Both the position numbers and the translations under genes were made by a program. Under the pieces are notes generated by a model that had not been told where the DNA came from, searched no databases, and saw nothing but the letters and a program-made list of their open reading frames with translations. A stretch of DNA of 64,000 nucleotides from Anthoceros angustus (lineage: Eukaryota; Plantae; Anthocerotophyta), in NCBI GenBank assembly GCA_010909165.1, contig MU008163.1:1922001-1986000 (forward strand). Reading direction: 5' to 3'. This document shows, one piece after another, positions 22,501 through 45,510 of the stretch. Every line of letters begins with the position of its first letter. Position 1 is the first letter of the stretch.

Positions 22501-24241
22501 GGTCTCCACCTGCAGACCCTGACCCCTTGCTTGAAAAAGGTGAGAAGTTCCAAAACAGCAACAGCTCCTTCGAGGCACGAACTAGGTTCCTGGAGCATAC
22601 CAGAATAGTGCCTGTACATGTCAGCTACTGGAAGGTGGCTGTCTGGACCTGCTGGTCAGTGGTTTCCTCCTCATTGCCTCCACAGCGTCAAGACATTAGA
22701 AGCTGGATCAGCGAAGGTGGCAGAAGAAGCTCAAGGTAGAACCGCCAGAAAGCACACACAGTAGTCCGAGTCTAGGAATGCGTGTCAGCTCGGAGCCTGG
22801 CATTACCAGCTCTTCCGACACGGACACCCCCTAACAGTCAAGACGACGAGGCCACATTCCATGAAATGAACACCTGATCCTATTCCCAACTGGCTATCCT
22901 CCCTGCTGTAGCATGGGTTGGTTCTCGTCGGAAGGTGTAGGGAGTCTTTACGCGGTTCCTTCGGCCGGCCCGGAACACACCGAAGGCCAACGGGCAGCAA
23001 CTCCGGGAAATGGATCCCCCAATCATCAGTTCAATCCCAAAGTTGCACATATTGTAAAGGGCTTTGGATTGAGCTCGTAACACGCGATGAGAACCGAAGC
23101 CATTTGCAACCTGTCAAGCGAATCACACATCCGCAGCATGTGCTTGGGCAGGCATGTGGGTTCCTGCAGCCGCGTTCAGCACTGGCTCTTAGCAGAGGGC
23201 ATGGATCGGACATATTCAGCTCGGGATGTAGGCTTCTCATGCTACATAGATGGAAGAGTTCAGCTTCCAAGGTTTTCAGCGAGGTGGTTTCACTCGACGT
23301 CTTTGTCTGGCCGCATGCTGCTAGCAAGGACGGTTTGGAATTCCAGAACAGATAAATGCCTTGCCATGGGGGTGTCCAGCTCAACCTCTGCATTGCCAAC
23401 TTCCAGCGCTTGGTCAGGAGGTTGTCCATGGAGGACAAACCTAGTCTCCGATGGCAGCGAGATCATGAACTGTTTGTATGGAGATGGGCATCTGAAGAGG
23501 GCTCTGCGGCCTCGGTTGAGACCTGAGTGCCCAGGCAGCTAGATAGGGACATATCCAGGCATGGGTTGGAGTGCGATAGGAGGACATGGGCAATTGTATG
23601 GCTGCAATTTTGGCTCCATAAGGAGCTTCAGAGTGTTTCGACATTTTGGAACAACGCAGTGCTTCCGAAGCAGACATCTCAGGGTTTACTGCAAATGGTC
23701 GAGGTGGAGAGGCTTTGAATACGCCCTTGCGGATGACACAAAAGGGTCGCGAATGGAACAAGCCCATACTTAATAGCATATCGAACGCTACTGAGAAATC
23801 ACTGAGAAGCCACTGTTATCTCCACTGAGAAATCTACGATGGGGTCATGCACCTCACGGGCCCGTACCGGCAGGTAGTTGTATCTTCTTATCGTTAGCCT
23901 CCGTAACTACCTAACCACTCACTAGAATGCTTGATTAAGCAAACCTGAGTGAATGATCCCAAACTTAAAGTATGTGTGCATGAGTGAATTGATGCAAGAG
24001 TAGTATAACTTGTCAAAAGTTCCATCATATAGTAATTCCACATGGTACACCATAGTGTAAGTGAGATTTTGATATTTAATTTATAATATTTATTATATAT
24101 CTGATTTCATATATATAAAGATTAAAAGATGAAATTAATAAGTAATTACTTTGTAGCTAGTCTTGTCCATTGATTATCATGGAACTAAGTGTGATATCGA
24201 GATTGAGCAATATCATATCGAAACATAGAAACATTTTAGCC

Positions 24242-24248
24242 TATATAT
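24242..24248 (+). promoter_or_regulatory. TATA box of secreted-repeat gene copy 1 (conserved in all 8 units)
   Basis: cc-TATATAT-g about 65 nt upstream of the ATG in every unit. Confidence 0.65.
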
Positions 24249-24308
24249 GTACCACCGTGATTGCAAATAAGATACTTTTCTTTGTGTTGAAGTACTAGTT
24301 TGTGAAAG

Positions 24309-25123
24309 ATGGCTACCACTAGCCTATTTGTTTTGTTGTTGCTATGTAGCATCTCTAGCATGGCTATAAGATGAGCCCGATCCAATTTTCACTCCCCATT
24401 GGCCAAATTCGTTGAAACCTACTTTCCATGGATTCCCTCCTTTTCCTAAAGTAGTACCCGATGGACCATCCCCACCCCATCTCCCTCTCCCTCTCCCCAT
24501 GTGTCACCAAATGATGTTACGATGTATCCTCCGTGTGATCGCCAAATTTTCCTCCTTTTCCTAAAGTAAGTAGTGCAGATGGACCATCCCCACCTCCCTC
24601 TCCCTCTCCCCATGTGTCACCAAATGATGTTCGATGTATCCTCCGTGTGATCGCCAACTTTTCCTCCTTTTCCTAAAGTAGAATGGACCACCCCACCCCA
24701 CATCTCCCTCTCCTCTTCCCACGTGTCACCAAATGATGTTCTCATGTATCCTCCGAGCCGTGATCGCCAACTTTTCCTCCTTTTCCTAAAGTAGTGCCCG
24801 ATGGACCACCCCACCCCATCTCCCTCTCCTCCTCCCACGTGTCACCAAATGATGTTCTCATGTATCCTCCAGCCGTGATCGCCAACTTTTCCTCCTTTTC
24901 CTAAAGTAGTACCGATGGACCATCCTCATCTCCTTCGCCTCTCCTCTCCCATGTGTCACCGAATGATGTTCCCATGTATCCTTCGGATCCGACGCCAAAG
25001 TTTTCCTCCTTTTCCCCAACGAGTACACTATGGACCATCCTCCTCGCCTCCAGACTCAACATTTTGGAAGATGTCAATGTTAATCATCTTCGTGCAAATA
25101 CGAACGATTTGTCTTTGAACTAA
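24309..25123 (+). CDS. Secreted Pro/Ser-rich multi-repeat protein, copy 1 (5 modules; frameshifted as assembled)
   Basis: ATG GCT ACC ACT AGC CTA TTT GTT TTG TTG TTG CTA TGT = MATTSLFVLLLLC signal peptide; modules FPPFPKVVPDGP..SPSPSPHVSPNDV[P/L]MYPP; tail ...VNVNHLRANTNDLSLN*. Frame reconstructed from the cross-copy consensus. Confidence 0.7.
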
Positions 25124-27236
25124 GGTATGCTTATGGGTAGGAGATATAAATTTGCGTGTCCATAGTAATTTAGATGTATTTCTTTGCTCATTTTCATAAT
25201 TTGCACTTGCTTATAACATTTGATTGTTGTAACAATTGTAGTTAGCCATGACCTCACCAAGCGTGGCATCCACAAAGCTAGGAGCAAACTCAAGGAGGTG
25301 CCTTTTGCAAAAGATTATGTCCTCTCGGTAGCAAATAGTGCATTTTGATAGAGCCTCGAGGTATAAGAGCTTGTGAGCAAATTTTGGTCAAGATAGGTAT
25401 TTATTCTACGCCTTTTGCTCAACATAGACTTTGCACTTTAAAGATATATGTATGAGCTCTTGAAAATGAAGAGAGGTTCATAGAGTTTTGAGATGGATCA
25501 TTCTTGTACTTGAGGTGGAAAATATTCTCTTATTATTATCAATGAGAAAGCACCAAAATTGAGTTTCGATTGGTATTTTTTCATTGACATTTTACTACCT
25601 ACTCCCCAATTGTTACAACGAAAAGCCAAAAGAAATCCATAATGCTTGCATGCTATGAATACGGCCGCAAATACTCTGGACCCATTGCTTGCACTGATGT
25701 TGCTAGTAGTCAACCTCATATGTTTGCCAATGAGGAGACATTAGTTATTCGATTACAATTAAGTCTGCATTTTATATTCCTATATTGTTCGAGAAGTGTC
25801 ATGTTCGTGTTCATGTTGGTGGCCATGAATAGCTAGTTGCCTATGGCATGAGGTAGTTAATTTAGTGTTGCCAACTAGAATTGAACCGCTAGTGGACAAA
25901 GTTTTAGGCTAGGGTTCGTGAAGACCCAATTGCTAGAAGTTATCGAATCGAGCATTGAAGCTACATTTCGCCTTGAATGCAAGACACCATATGCCCGGAC
26001 ATGCTCGCAAATGGCCAAAAGAAATTGAAGAATGAAGCTATGAAATGCAAAAGACTTGAACCTTCTACTCACCATAACGTTACTATAATCATAGTATCCG
26101 TTATCTTGTCTGCTTGTGTCTTCACAACGCATGGACAATTTTGGTAAACAATTAACACGCCTTCATCTACCACCAATCCCACCAAGGCCTATCAACTATG
26201 CATGGACACCATGGTCCACACTTATTTGGATCACCAAGTTGCTTGATCTCATCTGGTGCTACAAGTGCGCCTCGCTTCTTCACTTGACATCGTGTCTCGC
26301 AGTGCCACCCCATGGGGTGTCCACTCTACTCCTACATTGCCAACTTCGGCTGGTTAGGAGGTTGTCCGTGGAGGACAAACCTAGTCTCCGGCGGCGAGAT
26401 CATGAACTGCTTGTATGGAGATGGGCATCAAGAGGGCTCTGCCCTGCTGAGACACAGTGCCTGTGCAGCTAGATAGGGACATATCCGCATGGGTTGGAGT
26501 GCGATAGAGGACATGGGCAATTGTATGGCTGCAATTTTGGCTCCATAAGGAGCTCAGAGTGTTTACATTTTGGAACAACGCAGTGCTTCCTCTTGGGAAG
26601 CGTATATCTCGTGGTTTATCGCAAATGGTCGAGGTGGAGAGGCTTTGAATACGCCCTTGCGGATGACACAAAGGGTCGCGAATGGAACAAGCCCATACTT
26701 AATAGCATATCGAACGCCACTCGAGAAATCACCGAGAAGCCACCGTTGATCTCCACCGAGAAATCTACGATGGGGTCATGCACCTCACGGGTCTGTACTG
26801 CGTGTAGTTGTATCTTCTTATCGTTAGCCTCCAGAACCACCTAACCACTCACTAGAATGCTTGATTAAGCAAACCTCGAGTGAATGATCCCAAACTTAAA
26901 GTATATAAAATGAGTGAATTGATGCAAGAGTAGTACAACTTGTCAAAAGTTCCATCATATAGTAATTCCACATGGTACACCATAGTGTAAGTGAGATTTT
27001 GATATTTAATTTATAATATTTATTATATATCTGATTTCATATATATAAAGATTAAAAGATGAAATTAATAAGTAATTACTTTGTAGCTAGTCTTGTCCAT
27101 TGATTATCATGGAACTAAGTGTGATATCGAGATTGAGCAATATCATCGAAACATAGAAACATTTTAGCCTATATATGTACACTCGTGATTGCAAATAAGA
27201 TACTTTTCTTTGTGTTGAAGTACTAGTTTGTGAAAG

Positions 27237-27940
27237 ATGGCTACCACTAGCCTATTTGTTTTGTTGTTGCTATGTAGCAAAGATCTCTAGCATGGCTATA
27301 AGACGAGTCGATCCAATTTTCACTCCCCCATTGGCCAAATCTGAAACCTACTTCTCCATGGATTCCTCCTTTTCCTAAAGTAGTACCCGATGGACCATCC
27401 CCACCTCCTCTCCTCTCCCATGTGTCACCAAATGATGTTCGATGTATCCTCATGTGATCGCCAACTTTTCCTCCTTTTCCTAAAGTAAAATTCATGGACC
27501 ACCCCACCCCACATCTCCTCTCCTCTTCCCACGTGTCACCAAATGATGTTCCCATGTATCCTCCGAGCCGTGATCGCCAACTTTTCCTCCTTTTCCTAAA
27601 GTAGTGCCCATGGACCACCCCACCCCCATCTCCTCTCCCTCCTCCCACGTGTCACCAAATGATGTTCTCATGTATCCTCCGAGCCGTGATCGCCAACTTT
27701 TCCTCCTTTTCCTAAAGTAGTACCCGATGGACCATCCTCATCTCCTTCGCCTCTCCCTCTCCCCATGTGTCACCGAATGATGTTCCCATGTATCCTTCGG
27801 ATCCGATCGCCAAAGTTTTCCTCCTTTTCCCCAACGTAGTACACTATGGACCATCCTCCTCTCGCCTCGCCACTCAACATTTGCGGAAGATGTCAATGTT
27901 AATCATCTTCGTAAATACGAACGATTTGTCTTTGAACTAA
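27237..27940 (+). CDS. Secreted Pro/Ser-rich multi-repeat protein, copy 2 (4 modules; frameshifted as assembled)
   Basis: Same ATG/signal peptide, modules and TAA as copy 1. Confidence 0.68.
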
Positions 27941-30019
27941 GGTATGCTTGCGGTAGGAGATATAAATTTATGTGTCCATAGTAATTTAGATGTATTTCTT
28001 TGCTCATTTTCATAATTTGCACTTGCTTATAACATTTGATTGTTGTAACAATTGTAGTTAGCTTGCGACCTCACCAAGCGTGGCATCCACAAACAGGCTA
28101 GGAGCAAACTCAAGGAGGTGCCTTTTGCAAAAGATTATGTCCTCTCAGTAGCAAATAGTGCATTTTGATAAAGCCTCGGAGGTATAAGAGCTTGTGAGCA
28201 GCTTGGTCAGCATAGGTATTTATTCTACGTCTTTTGCTCAACATAGACTTTGCACTTTAAAGATATATGTATGAGCTCTTGAAAATGAAGAGAGGTTCAT
28301 AGAGTTTTGAGATGGATCATTCTTGTACTTGAGGTGGAAAATATTCTCTTATTATTATCAATGAGAAAGCACCAAAATTGAGTTTCGATTGGTATTTTTT
28401 CATTGACATTTTACTACCTACTCCCCAATTGTTACAACGAAAAGCCAAAAGAAATCCATAATGCTTGCATGCTATGAATACGGCCGCAAATACTATCGAC
28501 CCATTGCACCTGATGTTGCTAGTAGTCAACCTCATATGTTTGCCACGAGGAGACATTAGTTATTCGATTACAATTAAGTCTCGATTTTATATTCCTATAT
28601 TGTTCGAAGTGTCATGTTCGTGGTTCATGTTGGTGGCCATGAATAGCTAGTTGCCTATGGCATGAGGTAGTTAATTTAGTGTTGCCAACTAGAATTGAAC
28701 CGCTAGTGGACAAAGTTTTAGGCTAGGTCTGAAGACCAATTGCTAGAAGTTATCGAATCGAGCATTGAAGCTACATTTCGCCTTGAATGCAGCACCCATA
28801 TGCCCGGACATGCTCGCAAATGGCCAAAGAAATTGAAGAATGAAGCTATGAAATGTGCAACTGTGACTTGAACCTTCTACTCACCATAACGTTACTATAA
28901 TCATAGTATCGAGTTATCTTGTTCAGTCTCTCAATGCGTATGGACAATTTGCAAACAATTAACACGCCTTCATCTACCACCAATCCTACCAATGCCATAT
29001 CAACTATGCATGGACACCATGGTCCACACTTATTTGGATCACCAAGTTGCTTGATCTCATCTGGGTGCTACAAGTGCGCCTCGCTTTCTTCACTTGACAT
29101 CGTCTCCGCAGCCACCATGGGGGTGTCCACTCTACTCCTACATTGCCAACTTCCGGCTTGGTTAGAGGTTGTCCGTGGAGGACAAACCGGTCTCCGGCGC
29201 CGAGATCATGAACTGCTTGTATGGAGATGGGCATCTCAAGAGGTATGCGCTTGCTGAGACCTGAGCCTGTGCAGCTAGATAGGGACATATCCGTGCATGG
29301 GTTGGAGTGCGATAGGAGGACATGGGCAATTGTATGGCTGCAATTTTGGCTCCATAAGGAGCTTGAGTGTTTCGACATTTTGAACAACGAGCGTTTCCTC
29401 AAGGGGCGTATCTGTGGTTTACCGCAAATGGTCGAGGTGGAGAGGCTTTGAATACGCAGCATAGCGGATGGTCGCGAATGGAACAAGCCCATACTTAATA
29501 GCATATAACGCCATCGAGAAATCACCGAGAAGCCACTGCTGATCTCCACCGAGAAATCACATGGGTCATGCACCTCACGGGCCCGCATCGTGTAGTTATC
29601 TTTCATCGCTAGCCTGAATCACCTAACCACTCACTAGAATGCTTGATTAAGCAAACTGAGTGAATGATCCCAAACTTAAAGTATGTGTGCATGAGTGAAT
29701 TGATGCAAGAGTAGTACAACTTGTCAAAAGTTCCATCATATAGTAATTCCACATGGTACAATTATAGTGTAAGTGAGATTTTGATATTTAATTTATAATA
29801 TTTATTATATATCTGATTTCATATATAAAGATTAAAAAGATGAAATTAATAAGTAATTACTTTGTAGCTAGTCTTGTCCATTGATTATCATGGAACTAAG
29901 TGTGATATCGAGATTGAGCAATATCATATCGAAACATAGAAACATTTTAGCCTATATATGTACTACCGTGATTGCAAATAAGATACTTTTCTTTGTGTTG
30001 AAGTACTAGTTTGTGAAAG

Positions 30020-30725
30020 ATGGCTACCACTAGCCTATTTGTTTTGTTGTTGCTATGTAGCAAAGATCTCTAGCATGGCTATAAGATGAGCCCGTATCCA
30101 ATTTTCACTCCCCCATTGGCCAAATCTGAAACCTACTTTCCATGGATTCCCTCCTTTTCCCCAAAGTAGTACCCGATGGACCATCCTCCCTCTCCCTCCC
30201 CATGTGTCACCAAATGATGTTCGATGTATCCTCCAGGCGTGATCGCCAACTTTTTCCTCCTTTTCCCCAAAGTAGTACCGATGGACCACCCCACCCCACA
30301 TCTCCCTCTCCTCTTCCCACGTGTCACCAAATGATGTTCTCATGTATCCTCCAGCCGTGATCGCCAACTTTTCCTCCTTTTCCTAAAGTAGTACCCGATG
30401 GACCACCCCCACCCCATCTCCCTCTCCTCCTCCCACGTGTCACCAAATGATGTTCTCATGTATCCTCCGAGCCGTGATCGCCAACTTTTTCCTCCTTTTC
30501 CCCAAAGTAGTACCCGATGGACCATCCTCATCTCCTTCGCCTCTCCTCTCCTATGTGTCACCGAATGATGTTCCCATGTATCCTTGGATCCGATCGCCAA
30601 AGTTTTCCTCCTTCCCAACGAGTACACTATGGACCATCCTCCTCGCCTCGCCAGACTCAACATTTGCGGAAGATGTCAATGTTAATCATCTTCGTGCAAA
30701 TACGAACGATTTGTCTTTGAACTAA
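30020..30725 (+). CDS. Secreted Pro/Ser-rich multi-repeat protein, copy 3 (4 modules; frameshifted as assembled)
   Basis: Same architecture. ORF 30447-30725 shows FPKVVPDGPSSSPSP...VSPNDVPMYP...DSTFAEDVNVNHLRANTNDLSLN*. Confidence 0.68.
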
Positions 30726-32819
30726 GGTATGCTTATGGTAGGAGATATAAATTTGCGTGTCCATAGTAATTTAGATGTATTTCTTTGCTCATTTTCATAA
30801 TTTGCACTTGCTTATAACATTTGATTGTTGTAACAATTGTAGTTAGCCATGACCTCACCAAGCGTGGCATCCACAACAGTTAGGAGCAAACTCAAGGAGG
30901 TGCCTTTTGCAAAAGATTATGTCCTCTCAAGAGTAAATAGTGCATTTTGATAGAGCCTGAGGTATAAGAGCTTGTGAGTGCTTGGTCAAGATAGGTATTT
31001 ATTCTACGCCTTTTGCTCAACATAGACTTTGCACTTTAAAGATATATGTATGAGCTCTTGAAAATGAAGAGAGGTTCATAGAGTTTTTGAGATGGATCAT
31101 TCTTGTACTTGAGGTGGAAAATATTCTCTTATTATTATCAATGAGAAAGCACCAAAATTGAGTTTCGATTGGTATTTTTTCATTGACATTTTACTACCTA
31201 CTCCCAATTGTTACAACGAAAAGCCAAAGAAATCCATACGCTTGCATGCTATGAATACGGCCGCAAATACATCGGACCCATTGCTTTTGATGTTGCTAGT
31301 AGTCAACCTCATATGTTTGCCAATGAGAGACATTAGTTATTCGCCACAATTAAGTCTCGCATTTTATATTCCTATATTGTTCGAGAAGTGTCATGTTCGT
31401 CATGTTGGTGGCCATGAATAGCTAGTTGCCTATGGCATGAGGTAGTTAATTTAGTGTTGCCAACTAGAATTGAACCGCTAGTGGACAAAGTTTTAGGCTA
31501 GGGTCTTAAGACTCCAATTGCTAGAAGTTATCGAATCGAGCATTGAAGCTACATTTGCCTTGAATGCAGCACCATATGCGGACATGCTCGCAAATGGCCA
31601 AAGAAATTGAAGAATGAAGCTATGAAATGTGCAACCAGCACTTGAACCTTCTACTCACCATAACGTTACTATAATCATAGTATCCGAGTTATCTTGCTGC
31701 TTGTGTCTTCTGCCAAGCAGGCATGGACAATTTGCAAACAATTAACACGCCTTCATCTACCACCAATCCCACCAACCTATCAACTATGCATGGACACCAT
31801 GGTCCACACTTATTTGGATCACCAAGTTGCTTGATCTCATCCGGTGCTACAAGTGCACTCGCTTCTTCACTTGACATCGTCTCCTGCAGCCATATGGGGT
31901 GTCCACTCTACTCCTACATTGCCAACTTCCGGCTGGTTAGGAGGTTGTCCGTGGAGGACAAACCTAGTCTCCGGCGGCACAGATCATGAACTGTTGTATG
32001 GAGATGGGCATCAAGAGGGCTCTGGGCCTCGGTTGAGACCCGAGTGCCTGTGCGCTAGATAGGGACATATCCGGGCATGGGTTGGAGTGCGATAGGAGGA
32101 CATGGGCAATTGTATGGTTGCAATTTTGGCTCCATAAGGAGCTTGAGTGTTTCGACATTTTGGAACAACGCAGTGCTTCCTCTTGGGAAGCGTACATCTC
32201 GTGGTTTCTTTGCAAATGGTCGAGGTGGAGAGGCTTTGAATACGCCTGCGGATGACACAAAGGGTCGCGAATGGAACAAGCCCATACTTAATAGCATATC
32301 GAACGCCATCGAGAAATCACCGAAGCCAATTTGTTGATCTCCATCGAGAAATCTACGATGGGGTCATGCACCTCACGGGCCCGCACCGGTGTAGTTGTAT
32401 CTTCTTATCGTTAGCCTCGAACTACCTAACCACTCACTAGAATGCTTGATTAAGCAAACCCGAGTGAATGATCCCAAACTTAAAGTATGTGTGCATGGTG
32501 AATTGATGCAAGTAGTACAACTTGTCAAAAGTTCCATCATATAGTAATTCCACATGGTACACCATAGTGTAAGTGAGATTTTGATATTTAATTTATAATA
32601 TTTATTATATATCTGATTTCATATATATAAAGATTAAAAGATGAAATTAATAAGTAATTACTTTGTAGCTAGTCTTGTCCATTGATTATCATGGAACTAA
32701 GTGTGATATCGAGATTGAGCAATATCATATCGAAACACGAAACATTTTAGCCTATATATGTACACCAACGTGATTGCAACAAGATACTTTTCTTTGTGTT
32801 GAAGTACTAGTTTGTGAAG

Positions 32820-33627
32820 ATGGCTACCACTAGCCTATTTGTTTTGTTGTTGCTATGTAGCAGATCTCTAGCATGGCTATAAGATGAGTATCCAATTTTC
32901 ACTCCCCCATTGGCCAAATTCTTGAAACCCACTTTCCATGGACCTCCTTTTCCTAAAGTAGTACCCGATGGACCATCCCCACCCCATCTCCCTCCTCTCC
33001 CCATGTGTCACCAAATGATGTTCGATGTATCCTCCAGGCGTGATCGCCAAATTTTTCCTCCTTTTCCTAAAGTAGGCAGGATGGACCATCCCCACCCCTC
33101 TCCTCTCCCCATGTGTCACCAAATGATGTTCCGATGTATCCTCCAGTATGTGATCGCCAACTTTTCCTCCTTTTCCTAAAGTAAAATTCCGATGGACCAC
33201 CCCACCCCACCTCTCCTCTTCCACGTGTCACCAAATGATGTTCTCATGTATCCTCCGAGCCGTGATCGCCAACTTTTCCTCCTTTTCCTAAAGTAGTGCC
33301 CGATGGACCACCCCACCCCATCTCCCTCTCCCTCCTCCCACGTGTCACCAAATGATGTTCTCATGTATCCTCCGAGCCGTGATCGCCAACTTTTCCTCCT
33401 TTTCCTAAAGTAGTACCCGATGGACCATCCTCATCTCCTTCGCCTCTCCCTCTCCCCATGTGTCACCGAATGATGTTCCCATGTATCCTTCTGGATCCGA
33501 CCGCCAAAGTTTTCCTCCTTTTCCCCAACGTAGTACACTATGGACCATCCTCGCTCTCGCCACTCAACATTTGCGGAAGATGTCAATGTTAATCATCTTC
33601 GCAAAAAACCATTTGTCTTTGAACTAA
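32820..33627 (+). CDS. Secreted Pro/Ser-rich multi-repeat protein, copy 4 (5 modules; frameshifted as assembled)
   Basis: Same architecture. ORF 32910-33179 shows AKFLKPTFHGPPFPKVVPDGPSP and RDRQIFPPFPKV. Confidence 0.68.
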
Positions 33628-35709
33628 GGTATGCTCATGGTAGGAGATATAAATTATGTCCATAGTAATTTAGATGTATTTCTTGCTCATTTTCATAATT
33701 TGCACTTGCTTATAACATTTGATTGTTGTAACAATTGTAGTTAGCTTCACCTCACCAAGCGTGGCATCCACAAATGTGCTAGGAGCAAACTCAAGGAGGT
33801 GCCTTTTGCAAAGATTATGTCCTCTCGTGAGCAAATAGTGCATTTTGATAAAGCCCTGGAGGTATAAGAGCTTGTGAGCAGCTTGGTCAAGATAGGTATT
33901 TATTCTACGCCTTTTGCTCAACATAGACTTTGCACTTTAAAGATATATGTATGAGCTCTTGAAAATGAAGAGAGGTTCATAGAGTTTTGAGATGGATCAT
34001 TCTTGTACTTGAGGTGAAAATATTCTCTTATTATTATCAATGAGAAAGCACCAAAATTGAGTTTCGATTGGTATTTTTTCATTGACATTTTACTACCTAC
34101 TCCCCAATTGTTACAACGAAAAGCCAAAAGAAATCCATAATGCTTGCATGCTATGAATACGCTTAAATACCATCGACCCATTGCTTGCACCGATGTTGCT
34201 AGTAGTCAACCTCATATGTTTGCCAATGAGAGACATTAGTTATTCGGGCCATAATTAAGTCTCATTTTATATTCCCTATATTGTTCTGAGAAGTGTCATG
34301 TTCGTGTCTATGTTGGTGGCCATGAATAGCTAGTTGCCTATGGCATGAGGTAGTTAATTTAGTGTTGCCAACTAGAATTGAACCACTAGTGGACAAAGTT
34401 TTAGGCTAGGGTCAGAAGACTCAATTGCTAGAAGTTATCGAATCGAGTATTGAAGCTACATTTCGCCTTGAATGCGCACCATATGCCCGGACATGCTCGC
34501 AAATGGCCAAAGAAATTGAAGAATGAAGCTATGAAATGTGCAACCAAAGACTTGAACCTTCTACTCACCATAACGTTACTATAATCATAGTATCGAGTTA
34601 TCTTGCACAGTGTCTTCACAATGCATGGACAATTTGCAAACAATTAACACGCCTTCATCTACCACCAATCCCCAAGCAGCCTATCAACTATGCATGGACA
34701 CCATGGTCCACACTTATTTGGATCACCAAGTTGCTTGATCTCATCCTGGTGCCAAGTGCACCTCGCTTTCTTCACTTGACATCGTCTCCGCAGGCCACCC
34801 CATGGGGTGTCCACTCTACTCCTACATTGCCAACTTCTCTGGTTAGGAGGTTGTCCGTGGAGGACAAACCTAGTCTCCGATGGCGGCGAGATCATGAACT
34901 GCTTGTATGGAGATGGGCATCAAGAGGGCTCATGCCCTGCTGAGACCTCGAGTGCCTGTGAGATAGGGACATATCTGCATGGGTTGGAGTGCGATAGGAG
35001 GACATGGGCAATTGTATGGCTGCAATTTTGGCTCCATAAGGAGCTTTAGTGTCACATTTTGAACAACGCAGTTTCCTCTTGGGAAGCAGACATCTCGGGG
35101 TTTACGCAAATGGTCGAGGTGGAGAGGCTTTGAATACGCCTGCGGATGACACAAAAGGGTCGCGAATGGAACAAGCCCATACTTAATAGCATATCGAACG
35201 CCACTTGAGAAATCACCGAGAAGCCACTGATCTCCACGAAATTCACGGGGTCATGCACCTCACGGGCTGCATCGCAGGGTTGTATCTTCATCGTTAGCCT
35301 CAGTAACTACCTAACCACTCACTAGAATGCTTGATTAAGCAAACTGAGTGAATGATCCCAAACTTAAAGTATGTGTGCATGAGTGAATTGATGCAAGAGT
35401 AGTACAACTTGTCAAAAGTTCCATCATATAGTAATTCCACATGGTACACCATAGTGTAAGTGAGATTTTGATATTTAATTTATAATATTTATTATATATC
35501 TGATTTCATATATATAAAGATTAAAAGATGAAATTAATAAGTAATTACTTTGTAGCTAGTCTTGTCCATTGATTATCATGGAACTAAGTGTGATATCGAG
35601 ATTGAGCAATATCATATCGAAACATAGAAACATTTTAGCCTATATATGTACACCATCGTGATTGCAAATAAGATACTTTTCTTTGTGTTGAAGTACTAGT
35701 TTGTGAAAG

Positions 35710-36526
35710 ATGGCTACCACTAGCCTATTTGTTTTGTTGTTGCTATGTAGCAAGATCTCTAGCATGGCTATAAGGCAGATCCAATTTTCACTCCCCATTG
35801 GCCAAATTCGCTGAAACCTACTTTCCATGGATTCCTCCTTCCTAAAGTAGCACCGATGGACCATCCCCACCCCATCTCCTCTCCCTCTCCCCATGTGTCA
35901 CCAAATGATGTTCGATGTATCCTCCAGGCGTGATCGCCAAATTTTCCTCCTTTTCCTAAAGTAGTACCCATGGACCATCCCCACCTCCTCCCTCTCCCCA
36001 TGTGTCACCAAATGATGTTCGATGTATCCTCCAGGCGTGATCGCCAACTTTTCCTCCTTTTCCTAAAGTAGTACCCGATGGACCACCCCCACCCACATCT
36101 CCCTCTCCCTCTTCCCACGTGTCACCAAATGATGTTCTCATGTATCCTCCGAGCCGTGATCGCCAACTTTTCCTCCTTTTCCTAAAGTAGTGCCCGATGG
36201 ACCACCCCACCCCATCTCCCTCTCCCTCCTCCCACGTGTCACCAAATGATGTTCTCATGTATCCTCCGAGCCGTGATCGCCAACTTTTCCTCCTTTTCCT
36301 AAAGTAGTACCCGATGGACCATCCTCATCTCCTTCGCCTCTCCCTCTCCCCATGTGTCACCGAATGATGTTCCCATGTATCCTTGGGATCGATCGCCAAA
36401 GTTTTCCTCCTTTTCCCCAACGTAGTACACTATGGACCATCCTCCTCGCCTCGCCAGACTCAACATTTGCGGAAGATGTCAATGTTAATCATCTTCGCAA
36501 ATACGAACGATTTGTCTTTGAACTAA
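35710..36526 (+). CDS. Secreted Pro/Ser-rich multi-repeat protein, copy 5 (5 modules; frameshifted as assembled)
   Basis: Same ATG/signal peptide, modules and TAA. Confidence 0.68.
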
Positions 36527-38624
36527 GGTATGCTTGGTAGGAGATATAAATTTAACGTGTCCATAGTAATTTAGATGTATTTCTTTGCTCATTTTCATAA
36601 TTTGCACTTGCTTATAACATTTGATTGTTGTAATATTGTAGTTAGCTTGCGACCTCACCAAGCGTGGCATCCACAAACAAAGTAGGAGCAAACTCAAGGA
36701 GGTGCCTTTTGCAAAAGATTATGTCCTCGTGAAAATAGTGCATTTTGATAGAGCCTCGGAGGTATAAGAGCTTGTGAGCAGCTTGGTCAAGATAGGTATT
36801 TATTCTACGCCTTTTGCTCAACATAGACTTTGCACTTTAAAGATATATGTATGAGCTCTTGAAAATGAAGAGAGGTTCATAGAGTTTTGAGATGGATCAT
36901 TCTTGTACTTGAGGTGGAAAATATTCTCTTATTATTATCAATGAGAAAGCACCAAAATTGAGTTTCGATTGGTATTTTTTCATTGACATTTTACTACCTA
37001 CTCCCCAATTGTTACAACGAAAAGCCAAAAGAAATCCATAATGCTTGCATGCTATGAATCTCGCAAATACTACTGGACCCATTGCTTGCACGATGTTGCT
37101 AGTAGTCAACCTCATATGTTTGCCAATGAGGAGACATTAGTTATTCGGCTTACAATTAAGTCTGCATTTTATATTCCCTATATTGTTCGAGAAGTGTCAT
37201 GTCTGTCTATGTTGGTGGCCATGAATAGCTAGTTGCCTATGGCATGAGGTAGTTAATTTAGTGTTGCCAACTAGAATTGAACCGCTAGTGGACAAAGTTT
37301 TAGGCTAGGGTTCGTGAAGACTCCAATTGCTAGAAGTTATCGAATCGAGCATTGAAGCTACATTTCGTCTTGAATGCGGCACCCATATGCTGGACATGCT
37401 CGCAAATGGCCAAAGAAATTGAAGAATGAAGCTATGAAATGTGCAACCAGCACTTGAACCTTCTACTCACCATAACGTTACTATAATCATAGTATAGTTA
37501 TCTTGCTCGTTGTGTCTTCACACAGTATGGACAATTTGCAAACAATTAACACGCCTTCATCTACCACCAATCCTACCAAGGGCCTATCAACTATGCATGG
37601 ACACCATGGTCCACACTTATTTGGATCACCAAGTTGCTTGATCTCATCCGGGTGCTACAAGTGCGTGCCTCGCTTCACTTGACATCTCCTGGCCAGCCCA
37701 TGGGGTGTCCAGCTACTCCTACATTGCCAACTTCCGCTTGGTTAGGAGGTTGTCCGTGGAGGACAAACCTAGTCTCCGATGGCGCGAGATCATGAACTGC
37801 TTGTATGGAGATGGGCATCCGAAGAGGGCTCTGCTGCTGAGACACGAGTGCCTGTGCTAGATAGGGACATATCCGGGCATGGGTTGGAGTGCGATAGGAG
37901 GACATGGGCAATTGTATGGTTGCAATTTTGGCTCCATAAGGAGCTTGAGTGTTTCGACATTTTGGAACAACGCAGCAGCTTCCTCTTGGGAAGCGGACAT
38001 CTCGTGGTTTACCGCAAATGGTCGAGTGGAGAGGCTTTGAATACGCCTTGCGGATGACACAAAGGGTCGCGAATGGAACAAGCCCATACTTAATAGCATA
38101 TCGAACGCCATCGAGAAATCACCGAGAAGCCACCGTTGATCTCCACCGAGAAATCTCGATGGGGTCATGCACTCACGGGCCTGCACGTGTAGTTGTATCT
38201 TCTTATCGTTAGCCTCAGAACTACCTAACCACTCACTAGAATGCTTGATTAAGCAAACCCGAGTGAATGATCCCAAACTTAAAGTATGTGTGCATGAGTG
38301 AATTGATGCAAGAGTAGTACAACTTGTCAAAAGTTCCATCATATAGTAATTCCACATGGTACACCATAGTGTAAGTGAGATTTTGATATTTAATTTATAA
38401 TATTTATTATATATCTGATTTCATATATATAAAGATTAAAAGATGAAATTAATAAGTAATTACTTTGTAGCTAGTCTTGTCCATTGATTATCATGGAACT
38501 AAGTGTGATATCGAGATTGAGCAATATCATATCGAAACATAGAAACATTTTAGCCTATATATGTACACCACCGTGATTGCAAATAAGATACTTTTCTTTG
38601 TGTTGAAGTACTAGTTTGTGAAAG

Positions 38625-39652
38625 ATGGCTACCACTAGCCTATTTGTTTTGTTGTTGCTATGTAGCAAGATTCTAGCATGGCTATAAGACAGAGATCCAC
38701 CAATTCCCCCCATTGGCCAAATTCCGTTGAAACCTACTTTCCATGGATTCCTCCTTTTCCTAAAGTAGTACCCGATGGACCATCCCCACCCCATCTCCCT
38801 CTCCTCTCCCATGTGTCACCAAATGATGTTCGATGTATCCTCCAGTGATCGCCAAATTTTCCTCCTTTTCCTAAAGTAGTCACATGGACCATCCCCACCT
38901 CCCTCCTCTCCCATGTGTCACCAAATGATGAATGTATCCTCCAGGCGTGATCGCCAACTTTTCCTCCTTTTCCTAAAGTAGTACCCGATGGACCACCCCA
39001 CCCACATCTCCCTCCCTCTTCCCATGTCACCAAATGATGTTCGATGTATCCTCCAGCCGTGATCGCCAACTTTTCCTCCTTTTCCTAAAGTAGTACCCGA
39101 TGGACCACCCCACCCACATCTCCCTCTCCCTCTTCCCACGTGTCACCAAATGATGTTCTCATGTATCCTCCGAGCCGTGATCGCCAACTTTTCCTCCTTT
39201 TCCTAAAGTAGTGCCCGATGGACCACCCCACCCCATCTCCCTCTCCCACGTGTCACCAAATGATGTTCTCATGTATCCTCCGAGCCGTGATCGCCAACTT
39301 TTCCTCCTTTTCCTAAAGTACCCGATGGACCATCCTCATCTCCTTCGCCTCTCCTCTCCCATGTGTCACCAAATGATGTTCTCATGTATCCTCCGAGCCG
39401 TGATCGCCAACTTTTCCTCCTTTTCCTAAAGTAGTACCCGATGGACCATCCTCATCTCCTTCGCCTCTCCTCTCCCATGTGTCACCGAATGATGTTCCCA
39501 TGTATCCTCCGAGCCGTGATCGCCAAAGTTTTCCTCCTTTTCCCCAACGTAGTACACTATGGACCATCCTCCTCTCGCCTCGCCGACTCAACATTTGCGG
39601 AAGATGTCAATGTTAATCATCTTCGTGCAACAACGATTTGTCTTTGAACTAA
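38625..39652 (+). CDS. Secreted Pro/Ser-rich multi-repeat protein, copy 6 (7 modules; frameshifted as assembled)
   Basis: Same architecture. ORF 39211 shows HVSPNDVLMYPPSRDRQLF. Confidence 0.68.
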
Positions 39653-41759
39653 GGTATGCTTGCGGGTAGGAGATATAAATTTGCGTGTCCATAGTAATTT
39701 AGATGTATTTCTTTGCTCATTTTCATAATTTGCACTTGCTTATAACATTTGAATTGTTGTAACAATTGTAGTTAGCTTGCGACTCACCAAGCGTGGCATC
39801 CACAAATGTGCTAGGAGCAAACTCAAGGAGGTGCCTTTGCAAAGATTATGTCCTCTCGGTGCAAATAGTGCATTTTGATAGAGCCTCGGAGGTATAAGAG
39901 CTTGTGAGCAGCTTGGTCAAGATAGGTATTTATTCTCGTCCTTTTGCTCAACATAGACTTTGCACTTTAAAGATATATGTATGAGCTCTTGAAAATGAAG
40001 AGAGGTTCATAGAGTTTTTGAGATGGATCATTCTTGTACTTGAGGTGGAAAATATTCTCTTATTATTATCAATGAGAAAGCACCAAAATTGAGTTTCGAT
40101 TGGTATTTTTTCATTGACATTTTACTACCTACTCCCCAATTGTTACAACGAAAAGCCAAAGAAATCCATAATGCTTGCATGCTATGAATACGCCGCAAAT
40201 ACTATGGACCCATTGCTTGCACTGATGTTGCTAGTAGTCAACCTCATATGTTTGCCAATGAGGAGACATTAGTTATTCGATTACAATTAAGTCTCGCATT
40301 TTATATTCCTATATTGTTCTCGAGAAGTGTCATGTGTTCTATGTTGGTGGCCATGAATAGCTAGTTGCCTATGGCATGAGGTAGTTAATTTAGTGTTGCC
40401 AACTAGAATTGAGCGCTAGTGGACAAAGTTTTAGGCTAGGTTCGTGAAGACTCCAATTCAGAAGTTATCGAATCGAGCATTGAAGCTACATTTCGCCTTG
40501 AATGCAGCACCCATATGCTGGACATGCTCGCAAATGGCCAAAGAAATTGAAGAATGAAGCTATGAAATGTGCAACCAGCACTTGAACCTTCTACTCACCA
40601 TAACGCTACTATAATCATAGTATCTCGAGTTATCTTGCTCCGTGTCTTCACAGCAGCATGGACAATTTGCAAACAATTAACACGCCTTCATCTACCACCA
40701 ATCCTCAAGGGGTCTATCAACTATGCATGGACACCATGGTCCACACTTATTTGGATCACCAAGTTGCTTGATCTCATCTCGGGTGCTACAAGTGCACTCG
40801 CTTTCTTCACTTGACATCGTGTCTCCTGCAGCCACCCCCATGGGGTGTCCACTACTCCTACATTGCCAACTTCGGCGCTTGGTTAGGAGGTTGTCCGTGG
40901 AGGACAAACCTAGTCTCCGGGCGGCGCAGATCATGAACTGCTTGTATGGAGATGGGCATCCAAGAGGGCTCTGCCCTGGCTTGAGACCGAGTGCCCAGCT
41001 AGATAGGGACATATCCAGCATGGCATGGAGTGCGATAGGAGGACATGGGCAATTGTATGGTTGCAATTTTGGCTCCATAAGGAGCTCAGTGTTTCGACAT
41101 TTTGGAACAACGTGCTTCCTCTTGGGAAGCGAGACATCTCGTGGTTTATCGCAAATGGTCGAGGTGGAGAGGCTTTGAACACGCCTGCGGATGACACAAA
41201 GGGTCATGAATGGAACAAGCCCATACTTAATAGCATATCGAACGCCTCGAGAAATCACCGAGAAGCCACTGCTGATCTCCAGAAATCACGATGGGGTCAT
41301 GCACCTCACGGCCTGCATCGGCGTGTAGTTGTATCTTCTTATCGCTAGCCTCCTCAGAACTACCTAACCACTCACTAGAATGCTTGATTAAAAGGAGTGA
41401 ATGATCCCAAACTTAAAGTATGTGTGCATGAGTGAATTGATGCAAGAGTAGTACAACTTGTCAAAAGTTCCATCATATAGTAATTCCACATGGTACACCA
41501 TAGTGTAAGTGAGATTTTGATATTTAATTTATAATATTTATTATATATCTGATTTCATATATATAAAGATTAAAAAGATGAAATTAATAAGTAATTACTT
41601 TGTAGCTAGTCTTGTCCATTGATTATCATGGAACTAAGTGTGATATCGAGATTGAGCAATATCATATCGAAACATAGAAACATTTTAGCCTATATATGTA
41701 CACTACCGTGATTGCAAATAAGATACTTTTCTTTGTGTTGAAGTACTAGTTTGTGAAAG

Positions 41760-42698
41760 ATGGCTACCACTAGCCTATTTGTTTTGTTGTTGCTATGTAG
41801 CAGCATCTCTAGCATGGCTATAAGAGTAGCATCCAATTTTCACTCCCCATTGGCCAAATTCGTTGAAACCTACTTTCCATGGATTCCCTCCTTTTCCTAA
41901 AGTAGTACGATGGACCATCCCCACCTCCTCCTCTCCCCATGTGTCACCAAATGATGTTCGATGTATCCTCCGTATGTGATCGCCAACTTTTCCTCCTTTT
42001 CCTAAAGTAGTACCCGATGGACCACCCCACCCCACATCTCCCTCCCTCTTCCCACGTGTCACCAAATGATGTTCTCATGTATCCTCCGAGCCGTGATCGC
42101 CAACTTTTCCTCCTTTTCCTAAAGTAGTGCCCGATGGACCACCCCACCCCCATCTCCCTCTCCCTCCTCCCACGTGTCACCAAATGATGTTCTCATGTAT
42201 CCTCCAGGCGTGATCGCCAACTTTTCCTCCTTTTCCTAAAGTAGTACCCGATGGACCACCCCACCCCACATCTCCTCTCCTCTTCCCACGTGTCACCAAA
42301 TGATGTTCTCATGTATCCTCCGAGCCGTGATCGCCAACTTTTCCTCCTTTTCCTAAAGTAGTGCCCGATGGACCACCCCACCCCCATCTCCCTCTCCTCC
42401 TCCCACGTGTCACCAAATGATGTTCTCATGTATCCTCCGAGCCGTGATCGCCAACTTTTCCTCCTTTTCCTAAAGTAGTACCCGATGGACCATCCTCATC
42501 TCCTTCGCCTCTCCCTCTCCCCATGTGTCACCGAATGATGTTCCCATGTATCCTTGGATCCGATCGCCAAAGTTTTCCTCCTTTTCCCCAACGTAGTACA
42601 CTATGGACCATCCTCCTCTCGCTCGCCAGACTCAACATTTGCGGAAGATGTCAATGTTAATCATCTTCGCAAATACGAACGATTTGTCTTTGAACTAA
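41760..42698 (+). CDS. Secreted Pro/Ser-rich multi-repeat protein, copy 7 (6 modules; frameshifted as assembled)
   Basis: MATTSLFVLLLLCSSISSMAIR is intact. ORF 42554 shows FPNVVHYGPSSSRSPDSTFAEDVNVNHLR. Confidence 0.68.
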
Positions 42699-44804
42699 GG
42701 TATGCTTGCGGGTGGAGATATAAATTTGCGTGTCCATAGTAATTTAGATGTATTTCTTTGCTCATTTTCATAATTTGCACTTGCTTATAACATTTGATTG
42801 TTGTAACAATTGTAGTTAGCTTGCGACCTCACCAAGCGTGGCATCCACAAGCAGTGCTAGGAGCAAACTCAAGGAGGTGCCTTTGCAAAGATTATGTCCT
42901 CTCGGTAGCAAATAGTGCATTTTGATAGAGCCTCGGAGGTATAAGAGCTTGTGAGCAGTCGATAGGTATTTATTCTCGTCTTTGCTCAACATAGACTTTG
43001 CACTTTAAAGATATATGTATGAGCTCTTGAAAATGAAGAGAGGTTCATAGAGTTTTGAGATGGATCATTCTTGTACTTGAGGTGGAAAATATTCTCTTAT
43101 TATTATCAATGAGAAAGCACCAAAATTGAGTTTCGATTGGTATTTTTTCATTGACATTTTACTACCTACTCCCAATTGTTACTCTAAAAGCCAAAAGAAA
43201 TCCATAATGCTTGCATGCTATGAATACGGCCGCAAATACTCTGGACCCATTGCTTGCACTGATGTTGCTAGTAGTCAACCTCATATGTTTGCCAATGAGG
43301 AGACATTAGTTATTCGCCACAATTAAGTGCATTTTATATTCCTATATTGTTCGAGAAGTGTCATGTTCGTGTCTATGTTGGTGGCCATGAATAGCTAGTT
43401 GCCTATGGCATGAGGTAGTTAATTTAGTGTTGCCAACTAGAATTGAACCGCTAGTGGACAAAGTTTTAGGCTAGGGTTCGTGAAGACTCCAATTGCTAGA
43501 AGTTATCGAATCGAGCATTGAAGCTACATTTCGTCTTGAATGCAGCACCCATATGCCTGGACATGCTCTGCAAATGGCCAAAGAAATTGAAGAATGAAGC
43601 TATGAAATGTGCAACCAGGACTTGAACCTTCTACTCACCATAACGTTACTATAATCATAGTATCTGAGTTATCTTGCTCCGTTGTGTCTTCACAACAGGC
43701 ATGGACAATTTGCAAACAATTAACACGCCTTCATCTACCACCAATCCAGGTCAAGGGGTCTATCAACTATGCATGGACACCATGGTCCACACTTATTTGG
43801 ATCACCAAGTTGCTTGATCTCATCTGGTGCTACAAGTGCCCTCGTTTCTTCACTTGACATCGGGTCTCCTGCAGGCCTGCCATGGGGTGTCTCTACTCCT
43901 ACATTGCCAACTTCGGTAGCTTGGTTGGAGGTTGTCCGTGGAGGACAAACCTAGTCTCCGGCGGCGAGATCATGAACATTTGTGTATGGAGATGGGCATC
44001 AAGAGGGCTCTGCGCCTCGGTTGAGACCTCGAGTGCCTGTGCAGCTAGATAGGGACATATCCAGGCATGGGCTGGAGTGCGATAGGAGGACATGGGCAAT
44101 TGTATGGCTGCAATTTTGGCTCCATAAGGAGCTTGAGTGTTTCGACATTTTGGAACAACGCTGCTTCCTCTTGGGCGAGACATCTCGGGGTTTCTGCAAA
44201 TGGTCGAGGTGGAGAGGCTTTGAATACGCCCTTGCGGATGACACAAAAGGGTGGAATGGAACAAGCCCATACTTAATAGCATATCGAACGCTACTTTGAA
44301 ATCACCGAGAAGCCACCGTTGATCCACCGAGAAATCTACGATGGGGTCATGCACCTCACGGGCCGCATCGGCGGTGTAGTTGTATCTTCTTATCGTTAGC
44401 CTCGTAACTACCTAACCACTCACTAGAATGCTTGATTAAGCAAACCAGTGAATGATCCCAAACTTAAAGTATGTGTGCATGAGTGAATTGCAAAAGAGTA
44501 GTACAACTTGTCAAAAGTTCCATCATATAGTAATTCCACATGGTACACCATAGTGTAAGTGAGATTTTGATATTTAATTTATAATATTTATTATATATCT
44601 GATTTCATATATATAAGATTAAAAGATGAAATTAATAAGTAATTACTTGTAGCTAGTCTTGTCCATTGATTATCATGGAACTAAGTGTGATATCGAGATT
44701 GAGCAATATCATATCGAAACATAGAAACATTTTAGCCTATATATGTACACTCATGATTGCAAATAAGATACTTTTCTTTGTGTTGAAGTACTAGTTTGTG
44801 AAAG

Positions 44805-45510
44805 ATGGCTACCACTAGCCTATTTGTTTTGTTGTTGCTATGTAGCAGCATCTCTAGCATGGCTATAAGATGAGCCCGTATCCAATTTTCACTCCCCATT
44901 GGCCAAATTAGTGAAACCTACTTTCCATGGATTCCTCCTTTTCCTAAAGTAGTACCCGATGGACCATCCCCACCTCCTCTCCCTCTCCCATGTGTCACCA
45001 AATGATGTTCGATGTATCCTCCGGGCGTGATCGCCAACTTTTCCTCCTTTTCCTAAAGTAGTACGATGGACCACCCCACCCCACATCTCCCTCTCTCCTC
45101 TTCCCACGTGTCACCAAATGATGTTCTCATGTATCCTCCAGCCGTGATCGCCAACTTTTCCTCCTTTTCCTAAAGTAGTGCCCGATGGACCACCCCACCC
45201 CATCTCCCTCTCCCTCCCACGTGTCACCAAATGATGTTCTCATGTATCCTCCGGGCGTGATCGCCAACTTTTCCTCCTTTTCCTAAAGTAGTACCCGATG
45301 GACCATCCTCATCTCCTTCGCCTCTCCCCATGTGTCACCGAATGATGTTCCCATGTATCCTTCGGATCCGACGCCAAAGTTTTCCTCCTTTTCCCCAACG
45401 TAGTACACTATGGACCATCCTCCTCTCGCTCTCGCTCAGACTCAACATTTGCGGAAGATGTCAATGTTAATCATCTTCGTGCAAATACGAACGATTTGTC
45501 TGTGAACTAA
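44805..45510 (+). CDS. Secreted Pro/Ser-rich multi-repeat protein, copy 8 (4 modules; frameshifted as assembled)
   Basis: MATTSLFVLLLLCSSISSMAIR is intact; same modules and TAA. Confidence 0.68.

Follow-up and report, generated by a model that had tools for sequence, protein, structure and literature searches.

A young nested tandem array in Anthoceros angustus, probably a methylated macrosatellite built from the remains of a dead gene

Several macrosatellites, i.e., tandem arrays of kilobase-sized units, carry genes. Each 3.3-kb unit of the human D4Z4 array includes a DUX4 ORF, and RS447 and CT47 are further gene-bearing macrosatellites. These arrays are CpG-rich and usually methylated and silenced, and their copy number shifts by unequal exchange. 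In plants, the genes for extensins, proline-rich proteins, and arabinogalactan proteins are often located in tandem arrays, with variable repeat numbers. Here, we describe a locus that resembles both systems in part, located in a 64,000-nt window of the Anthoceros angustus genome (contig MU008163.1, positions 1,922,001 to 1,986,000; all coordinates below are those of the window). Like D4Z4, RS447, and CT47, the locus consists of head-to-tail kilobase units, each of which has a promoter-like region together with a gene or the remnant of one. Unlike them, it is a land-plant locus of ~8 units, the remnant is an orphan Pro/Ser-rich sequence with a minisatellite of its own, and methylation is something that we infer. 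As in plant hydroxyproline-rich cell-wall proteins (HRGPs), tandem Pro/Ser-rich modules that contain Ser-Pro runs come after a signal-peptide-like start; unlike in HRGPs, the in-frame pieces have no SPPPP blocks, Tyr cross-link motifs, or PPVYK-type pentapeptides, and the frames are broken. We consider it probable that the locus is a young and likely methylated pseudogene macrosatellite, amplified after the death of the gene and further garbled by assembly errors.

The array contains eight units with a spacing of 2783–3135 nt, whose ATGs are the first positions of the pseudo-CDSs in Table 1. As assembled, the units are 93–96% identical to one another, and their kilobase size and head-to-tail arrangement are those of a macrosatellite. 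The original prediction described a nested anatomy for the unit: a TATA box, an ATG ~65 nt further on, a signal-peptide-like start, sub-repeats, and a conserved tail with a TAA stop codon at its end. Indeed, this anatomy is present in all eight units, with a TATATAT motif ~65 nt upstream of each ATG and sub-repeats of ~113–117 nt forming an internal array inside every unit. Module alignment recovered exactly the predicted numbers of 5, 4, 4, 5, 5, 7, 6, and 4 modules per unit, i.e., 40 in total. The order of the modules (first, A, B, last) is kept across units, with some units having extra first-type modules or extra A/B pairs. Together, the unit array and the internal module array support amplification at two nested scales, as had been proposed. 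The two edges of the array are in the same unit phase (start at unit position 43878, end at 43891, by self-BLAST of unit 7) and share ~14 nt of microhomology, GCCATGGGGTGTC. The spacer between pseudo-CDSs has no ORF of >130 codons in the majority consensus. In the last unit, the spacer is interrupted by 2.5 kb of sequence that includes a MITE-like element with 32-nt inverted ends (46580–46611 and 47798–47829).

Table 1. Positions of the array, its parts, and neighboring features within the window (frame changes are minimum numbers)
Feature	Positions	Strand	Evidence
Older inverted single unit copy; ~2 modules, 70–78% identical, ATG changed to AAG	15894..17661	-	
Intact 1090-aa PPR gene between old and young copies	19306..22578	-	Pfam PPR families, E down to 1e-153
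Whole tandem array: left partial unit, eight units, interrupted last spacer	23362..49216	+	self-BLAST of unit 7
Pseudo-CDS of unit 1, from ATG to TAA; 5 modules, ≥11 frame changes	24309..25122	+	
Pseudo-CDS of unit 2; 4 modules, ≥12 frame changes	27237..27939	+	
Pseudo-CDS of unit 3; 4 modules, ≥15 frame changes; has the unit-specific junction variant (5-T / CCCCAAAG)	30020..30724	+	
Pseudo-CDS of unit 4; 5 modules, ≥15 frame changes	32820..33626	+	
Pseudo-CDS of unit 5; 5 modules, ≥16 frame changes; one 40-codon in-frame module at 36050–36169	35710..36525	+	
Pseudo-CDS of unit 6; 7 modules, ≥17 frame changes	38625..39651	+	
AT-rich block, invariant and present in every unit; comprises TATA-like motif, 5' leader, and opening 42 nt of ORF	41509..41803	+	
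Pseudo-CDS of unit 7; 6 modules, of which five are exactly 117 nt; ≥17 frame changes	41760..42697	+	
34-nt junction block (one of 28), in which each forward frame has a stop	42445..42478	+	
Pseudo-CDS of unit 8; 4 modules, ≥14 frame changes; its 5' version, with TGA at codon 23, matches independent X1 contig	44805..45509	+	
2.5-kb interruption in the spacer of the last unit	46289..48814	.	
Intact 155-aa gene of unknown family adjoining the array	49153..49620	-	homologues

While the anatomy was as predicted, the reading frames were not. The original prediction held that a few 1-nt corrections would yield one open frame. We counted the minimum number of frame changes per copy between the peptide landmarks on which that prediction was built. 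Each copy needs 11–17 changes (117 in total), numbers that apply to the copies as assembled and mix real lesions with errors at CG/CHG hot spots, and even the majority consensus needs 13. Translation of all units showed that the ORF is open from start to stop in none of the eight copies, and only seven of the 40 modules are internally in frame (FPPFPKVVPDGP...HVSPNDV.MYPPSRDRQL). In the majority consensus, modules are 116–118 nt long, the central ones modally 117 nt, and all three forward frames contain stops. The 40-residue (120-nt) module that had been taken as the unit of the gene is a minority variant picked among the copies. Similarly, the predicted junctions with runs of five Ts exist, and they put the junction in frame in the translations of units 3 and 4 and in the module alignment, but they too are minority variants. 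On the minus strand, which is G/A-rich, ORFs of up to 133 aa run through the modules; we discount them because they are discontinuous, belong to no family, and would be expected from base composition.

Some of the lesions are shared among modules or units. First, a 34-nt block, TGATCGCCAACTTTTCCTCCTTTTCCTAAAGTAG, occupies 28 of the 32 internal module junctions (23 exact, five with one mismatch) and holds TGA, TAG, and TAA across the three forward frames. Exact repetition of this block 23 times excludes random error as its cause. Since the junctions of the older inverted copy (CAAACTTTCCCT) and of the last module of the young units (CAAAGTTTTCCT) are both in frame, the internal junction appears to have lost 1 nt before it multiplied. 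Second, in an independent DNA sequencing run, X1, a k-mer contig with a depth of 36 (~5–6 copies) reads AGATGAGCCCGT; this sequence lacks 1 nt that is present in the older copy and has a TGA at codon 23. Third, a 134-nt X1 contig with a depth of 25.7 (~4 copies) places the three landmarks of the original prediction in three different frames within the last module; this contig carries the CCTCTCCCTCTCCCCATG variant, which is seen in four assembled units. Copy numbers for X1 were derived from internal consistency, with the depth of 51.8 for the array-wide conserved block taken as all eight copies and 25.7 as the four-copy variant. If X1 was a nanopore run, its contigs could share systematic errors with the assembly. 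The lesions common to the copies are not noise.

Could the array nonetheless consist of eight genes that are intact and expressed and that encode a secreted, multi-module Pro/Ser-rich protein, as originally predicted, with every frameshift and stop being an assembly error? The assembly is demonstrably noisy at this locus, and the noise is of a type that creates false frameshifts. Moreover, some modules are in frame, the most frequent module length, 117 nt, is divisible by three, several hot spots have an in-frame variant in some copy, and frames are kept in the older copy. However, with eight noisy copies to choose from, an in-frame variant is on offer at almost any site, and homopolymers of ≥5 nt are correct in the nearby PPR gene. 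This reading is contradicted by the shared lesions, including the junction block with stops in three frames, by X1 contigs at multi-copy depth that carry the codon-23 TGA and the three-frame last module, by the number of frame changes left in the majority consensus, by the lack of any homologue among 1.84 billion representative proteins, and by the lack of codon-position bias (see below). We regard it as very unlikely.

Assembly noise is nevertheless a substantial part of what distinguishes the copies. Per position, substitutions are ~6- to 7-fold and indels 4- to 5-fold more frequent ≤2 nt from a consensus CG or CHG site than ≥6 nt away. At the CG/CHG sites themselves, deletions (6.0%), transversions (3.8%), and transitions (5.9%) occur at comparable rates, and variability correlates with the density of CG and CHG sites (Spearman 0.65). 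Because the differences concentrate within 2 nt of these sites, and because deletions and transversions are as common there as transitions, many of the copy-to-copy indels are probably assembly errors. X1 contigs also differ from the assembled units mostly by gaps. Hence, the earlier suggestion that the indels are errors probably holds for many differences between copies, but not for the shared lesions, which are real. By contrast with the rest of the unit, where 12–43% of columns are variable, only 0–7% are variable in the AT-rich block, and the eight copies do not differ at all over the opening 42 nt of the ORF. The block has a GC content of 28% and only three CG and three CHG sites, and we attribute its invariance to a lack of methylatable sites. 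The PPR gene serves as an internal control for assembly accuracy in unique DNA: its ORF is unbroken despite eight homopolymers of ≥5 nt. The best match to the PPR protein is 64% identical, and the next matches, from ferns, conifers, lycophytes, and a liverwort, are ≤43% identical.

Methylation-linked base-calling and consensus errors are a feature of long reads, although a text search of one nanopore review found no statement on methylation-linked consensus errors. The best account of the noise pattern appears to be that bases at methylated cytosines were miscalled in the long reads, and that polishing with short reads could not remove these errors from a multi-copy array. If so, the array would be heavily methylated and therefore probably silent. 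The error pattern thus suggests that the array is probably methylated, and silencing is likewise probable. One possible RNA run yielded a single 158-nt contig, which was assigned to the left-edge copy.

The older inverted copy is present as originally described, with MYPGGLDRQTFPLIPKVVH in frame. It had been put forward as independent support for a single frame; it does keep the same frames, but in three pieces. These stop-free pieces (16524–16724, 16354–16509, and 16251–16373, all on the minus strand) span 66, 51, and 40 codons. Because the older copy keeps the proposed frames in this way, a real gene for a secreted Pro/Ser-rich protein is a plausible ancestor, judging from the resemblance and from stop-free stretches in C/T-rich sequence, where stops are rare. 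Comparison of the old and young copies gave no sign of purifying selection, either as a third-position excess or as stronger conservation of coding sequence than of flanks: differences at the three codon positions number 19, 22, and 29, and divergence is 17.6% in the coding part and 19–19.5% in the flanks.

These observations bear on a second alternative, that there was never a gene, and that the locus is a 117-nt minisatellite within a 2.9-kb macrosatellite whose C/T-rich strand happens to read as Pro/Ser-rich, with an ATG and a hydrophobic start arising by chance. The absence of a third-position excess and the equal divergence of the flanks are consistent with this reading, as is the failure to find a homologue or Pfam family. 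Open stretches of 40–66 codons carry little weight against it, because stops are rare in C/T-rich sequence. In addition, a 9-kb contig from a related species that contains a homologue of the neighboring 155-aa gene has no such gene beside it, and the module motif is absent from that contig. A coincidental origin would, however, have to account for a coherent plan that comprises a TATA-like motif, ATG, signal-peptide shape, 39-codon period, non-repetitive tail, and conserved stop. It would also have to account for an older copy that, at 20–30% divergence, holds the frame from the signal through the first module over 66 codons, with the junction and the tail in frame. We consider this alternative unlikely, and continue to favor a dead gene.

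Searches for relatives of the putative protein were negative. A profile of the seven in-frame modules found no homologue at E ≤0.001 among the representative proteins, and Pfam searches of the young and old ORF pieces, the spacer ORFs, and the minus-strand module ORFs found no family at E up to 1. There was no match in a word-based protein search with the minus-strand two-module ORF, nor in exact-pattern scans of metagenome contigs with either the signal-peptide region or the module core. Rfam and tRNA scans across the window found nothing. By eye, MATTSLFVLLLLCSSISSMA has the shape of a signal peptide (a hydrophobic core and small residues at −3 and −1), with the best-supported version stopping at codon 23.

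The right edge of the array lies 63 nt inside the 3' end of the neighboring 155-aa gene; therefore, each unit carries a fragment of that gene. Homologues of the 155-aa protein are 155 and 153 aa long and 60–61% identical over 90–94% of the query. For related-species contigs found via homologues of the PPR and 155-aa genes, alignment is limited to coding regions; in contig L003, the DNA match is confined to the 155-aa gene. The position of the edge also bears on whether the unit is a transposable element or the internal tandem-repeat region of one. A second, diverged, inverted copy 6 kb away would fit such an element. However, Pfam found no transposable element protein domains in any unit ORF, and the units lack both terminal inverted repeats and long terminal repeats. 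Instead, they have same-phase edges with microhomology, as in segmental tandem duplication, and include the 3' end of an ordinary neighboring gene. We consider a transposable element highly improbable.

On the reading that we favor, the order of events might have been as follows. An ordinary 2.9-kb genomic segment would recently have been amplified in tandem to give eight full units plus edge pieces. The segment would have consisted of a promoter-like, AT-rich block, the remains of a gene, a non-coding spacer, and the last 63 nt of the 155-aa gene. This gene would have been lineage-specific and would have encoded a secreted Pro/Ser-rich protein with modules of ~39 codons. The gene was presumably already dead when the segment was amplified, with all or most units sharing the 1-nt loss that leads to the TGA at codon 23. 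Likewise, the internal module that multiplied would have carried a junction that was 1 nt short, closing all three frames. Later, the numbers of units and modules may have expanded and contracted by unequal exchange. Finally, assembly would have overlaid false 1- to 2-nt indels and substitutions around CG and CHG sites on the real lesions.

This locus serves as a warning that multi-copy, probably methylated arrays in this assembly are dense with false indels near CG and CHG sites. Selecting in-frame variants from different copies is therefore no way to recover hidden genes, and independent reads are needed to tell real lesions from noise. We think it improbable that the noise hides at least one intact unit, or that an intact paralogue lies elsewhere in this genome. 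Such a gene would point to the recent birth and burst amplification of a bryophyte-lineage family of secreted wall or mucilage proteins with 39-residue modules and module numbers that vary between neighbors. Were the genes of the array intact, they would constitute a new family of secreted repeat proteins in an early-diverging land plant. The reading that we consider probable is more modest: a young nested tandem repeat that arose from a dead orphan gene and captured the end of the gene next to it. As such, the locus would cleanly illustrate two-scale amplification in which the edges of the duplication can still be read.

The array is a macrosatellite, probably gene-derived, with a minisatellite nested inside it. 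It is of an ordinary kind, in a plant lineage that has been sampled poorly. Its eight head-to-tail units (2783–3135 nt long, 93–96% identical to one another as assembled) each contain a block of a 113–117-nt sub-repeat, the module. Tandem Repeats Finder places the eight blocks ~2.9 kb apart, and an exact 11-nt search locates the ATG-bearing starts at 24309, 27237, 30020, 32820, 35710, 38625, 41760, and 44805, with no difference among the eight over the first 42 nt from the ATG. With the module anchor as the cutting point, we count 5, 4, 4, 5, 5, 7, 6, and 4 full modules per unit, 40 in all, reproducing the counts of the original prediction. Module types are ordered first, A, B, last, and are orthologous from unit to unit, meaning that the module array is older than the unit amplification; module number varies between units through additional first-type modules or additional A/B pairs. 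The array starts and ends at an identical unit position, with ~14 nt of microhomology at its edges. The majority consensus of the spacer has no long ORF. The MITE-like element that lies in the last spacer has short sub-repeats of the CCCATTTAGAGGGG type inside it.

The original prediction held that 1-nt corrections would restore a single open frame, and hence eight hidden genes for a secreted Pro/Ser-rich protein. We find that frame open in none of the eight units. Following the predicted peptide landmarks through three frames, at least 11–17 frame changes are needed per copy (117 in total, ~1 per 55 nt), and 7 of the 40 modules are internally in frame. Majority-consensus modules are 116–118 nt long with stops in each forward frame, and 13 frame changes remain in the majority-consensus gene, even though private noise should cancel there. 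The strongest single fact against an open frame is a 34-nt block, TGATCGCCAACTTTTCCTCCTTTTCCTAAAGTAG, with TGA, TAG, and TAA in frames one, two, and three, respectively; it is found at 28 of 32 internal module junctions, and is exact in 23. The predicted 120-nt module and 5-T junction turn out to be only minority variants among the copies, the 5-T junctions being mostly in unit 3, with one in unit 4. Within unit 3 (30147–30610, which also holds extra-T junctions), three of the four full modules (m1, m2, and m4) read CCCCAAAG where others read CCTAAAG. This variant is absent from all other units, and is due either to intra-unit conversion or to a unit-specific systematic consensus error.

The idea that assembly errors have damaged the units is right in kind, since a good deal of the damage is probably error. 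When units are compared, there are ~0.5–0.6 indel events for each substitution, far more than expected in diverged plant DNA. Variation is patchy: AT-rich blocks (e.g., 41509–41803) are invariant, while GC-rich blocks have 20–43% variable columns, and variability tracks CG+CHG density (Spearman 0.65). Within 2 nt of a consensus CG/CHG site, substitutions occur at 0.08–0.10 and 1–2-nt indels at 0.03–0.04 per position, as compared to 0.013 and ~0.007 at distances of at least 6 nt. In the site columns, deletions (6.0%) and transversions (3.8%) are no less common than transitions (5.9%), and the columns immediately beside the sites are hit at almost the same rate. Deamination of methylcytosine would yield transitions at cytosine only. 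Nanopore consensus sequences are prone to errors at methylated cytosines, and the pattern fits long-read base-calling errors of this type; one nanopore review does not state a methylation-linked consensus error. The PPR ORF adjoining the array, in unique DNA, is unbroken despite eight homopolymers of ≥5 nt, indicating that the noise is confined to the array, whose multiple copies defeat short-read polishing. The 295-nt “conserved promoter” block has only 3 CG and 3 CHG sites; its invariance is due to this scarcity, and is not evidence of selection.

A public DNA run (X1) and a possible RNA run (X2) were compared, as k-mer contigs, with the 6,000 nt at 38375–44374. A quarter of the sampled words are present in X1, and next to none in X2. 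Five X1 contigs were rebuilt from their listed differences and each was set against all units. Gaps dominate, with one contig showing 7 mismatches versus 33 gap letters over eight units. Depth in the X1 contigs agrees with copy number: 51.8 at a block common to all eight units, and 25.7 for a contig with the CCTCTCCCTCTCCCCATG variant, which exactly four of the assembled units carry. An X1 contig of depth 36 has AGATGAGCCCGT after the signal-peptide-like stretch, matching the unit 3/8 version, with a TGA at codon 23. At this site, the old copy (a diverged, inverted single copy of the unit) has AGACTGAACCCG, which keeps the frame; hence, AGATGAGCCCGT reflects a real 1-nt loss common to the young units. 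In a 134-nt X1 contig (depth 25.7), FPKVVPDGP, HVSPNDVPMYP, and DRQSFPPFPNVV are each in another frame. Frameshifts and stops are thus retained in part by independent reads, as the TGA and the three-frame contig, which counts against the original prediction, with the proviso that the X1 platform is not on record and, if it is nanopore, systematic errors are possibly common to X1 and the assembly. In the sole X2 contig touching the stretch, the loose letters are identical to the left-edge partial unit (23376–23405 and ~23362–23540) and not to any internal one. Should X2 prove to be RNA, this would point to low-level transcription at the left edge of the array, where a 151-aa ORF lies.

In the old copy, spacer end, promoter block, pseudo-CDS, and 3′ flank follow one another as they do in the young units, and the start codon has changed from ATG to AAG. 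Three of its pieces are stop-free in the predicted frame: 66 codons from the signal-like start to FPPFPKVVP, 51 codons that include DGPSPSPSPSPAPSPQVSPNDV, and 40 codons that cover the junction and tail. The junctions of the old copy, CAAACTTTCCCT, and of the young last module, CAAAGTTTTCCT, are in frame. The young internal junction, CAACTTTTCCT, is 1 nt shorter than either, suggesting that the frameshift was already in the module that multiplied, i.e., that module amplification followed gene death. Differences between old and young copies are spread 19/22/29 by codon position, and divergence is 17.6% in the coding part and 19–19.5% in the flanks; both are evidence against strong constraint. 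No Pfam family was found for any piece tested. A profile of seven in-frame modules had no match among 1.84 billion representative proteins, a library that contains a relative's transcriptome protein but not the Anthoceros angustus proteome, so this absence is only moderately informative. A related species' 9-kb contig with a homologue of the neighboring 155-aa gene has no module motif. We consider it only slightly more likely that the sequence is a pseudogene, descended from a lineage-specific gene for a secreted Pro/Ser-rich protein, than that no gene ever existed here.

The window is plant DNA. The closest database relative of the PPR gene is 64% identical, with further matches (≤43%) in ferns, conifers, lycophytes, and a liverwort. 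The old copy and the young array are inverted relative to each other and flank this gene, which suggests an old inverted duplication around it. The 155-aa gene seems to be an orphan gene conserved in this plant lineage; of its two homologues, one comes from a contig of a related species and the other from a transcriptome. The right edge of the array is 63 nt inside its 3′ end, such that every unit carries a fragment of the gene, as expected of segmental duplication. A transposon origin of the unit is disfavored by this fragment and by the lack of TE domains; searches for TE domains, RNA families, and tRNAs found none. The ORF pieces far to the left of the array are probably exons of a WD-repeat gene.

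Features of the array and its surroundings (window positions)
Feature	Position	Strand	Remarks
ORF pieces	6823–9462	+	weak WD40/beta-propeller matches
Old single copy of unit	15894–17661	−	70–78% identical to young units
PPR gene	19306–22578	−	intact, 1090 aa
151-aa ORF	23087–23542	+	
Array, true span	23362–49216	+	self-BLAST
Insertion	46289–48814		interrupts last spacer; holds MITE-like element
MITE-like element	46580–47829		~1.25 kb; 32-nt inverted ends, 91% complementary; in 2.5-kb interruption of last spacer
155-aa gene	49153–49620	−	intact, no Pfam family; homologues of 155 and 153 aa, full-length, 60–61% identical
789-aa ORF	51029–53398	+	no Pfam match (E ≤ 1)

We propose that a single-copy segment with a dead orphan gene may have been duplicated in tandem at short microhomology, and that unequal exchange would then have produced eight units, shuffling module numbers between 4 and 7. 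The array, presumably methylated, would have acquired its dense false differences in the assembly through long-read base-calling at methylated cytosines. What the original prediction observed was largely right, but its central interpretation, hidden genes, was wrong, and the array is a cautionary example against rescuing “hidden genes” from noisy arrays.
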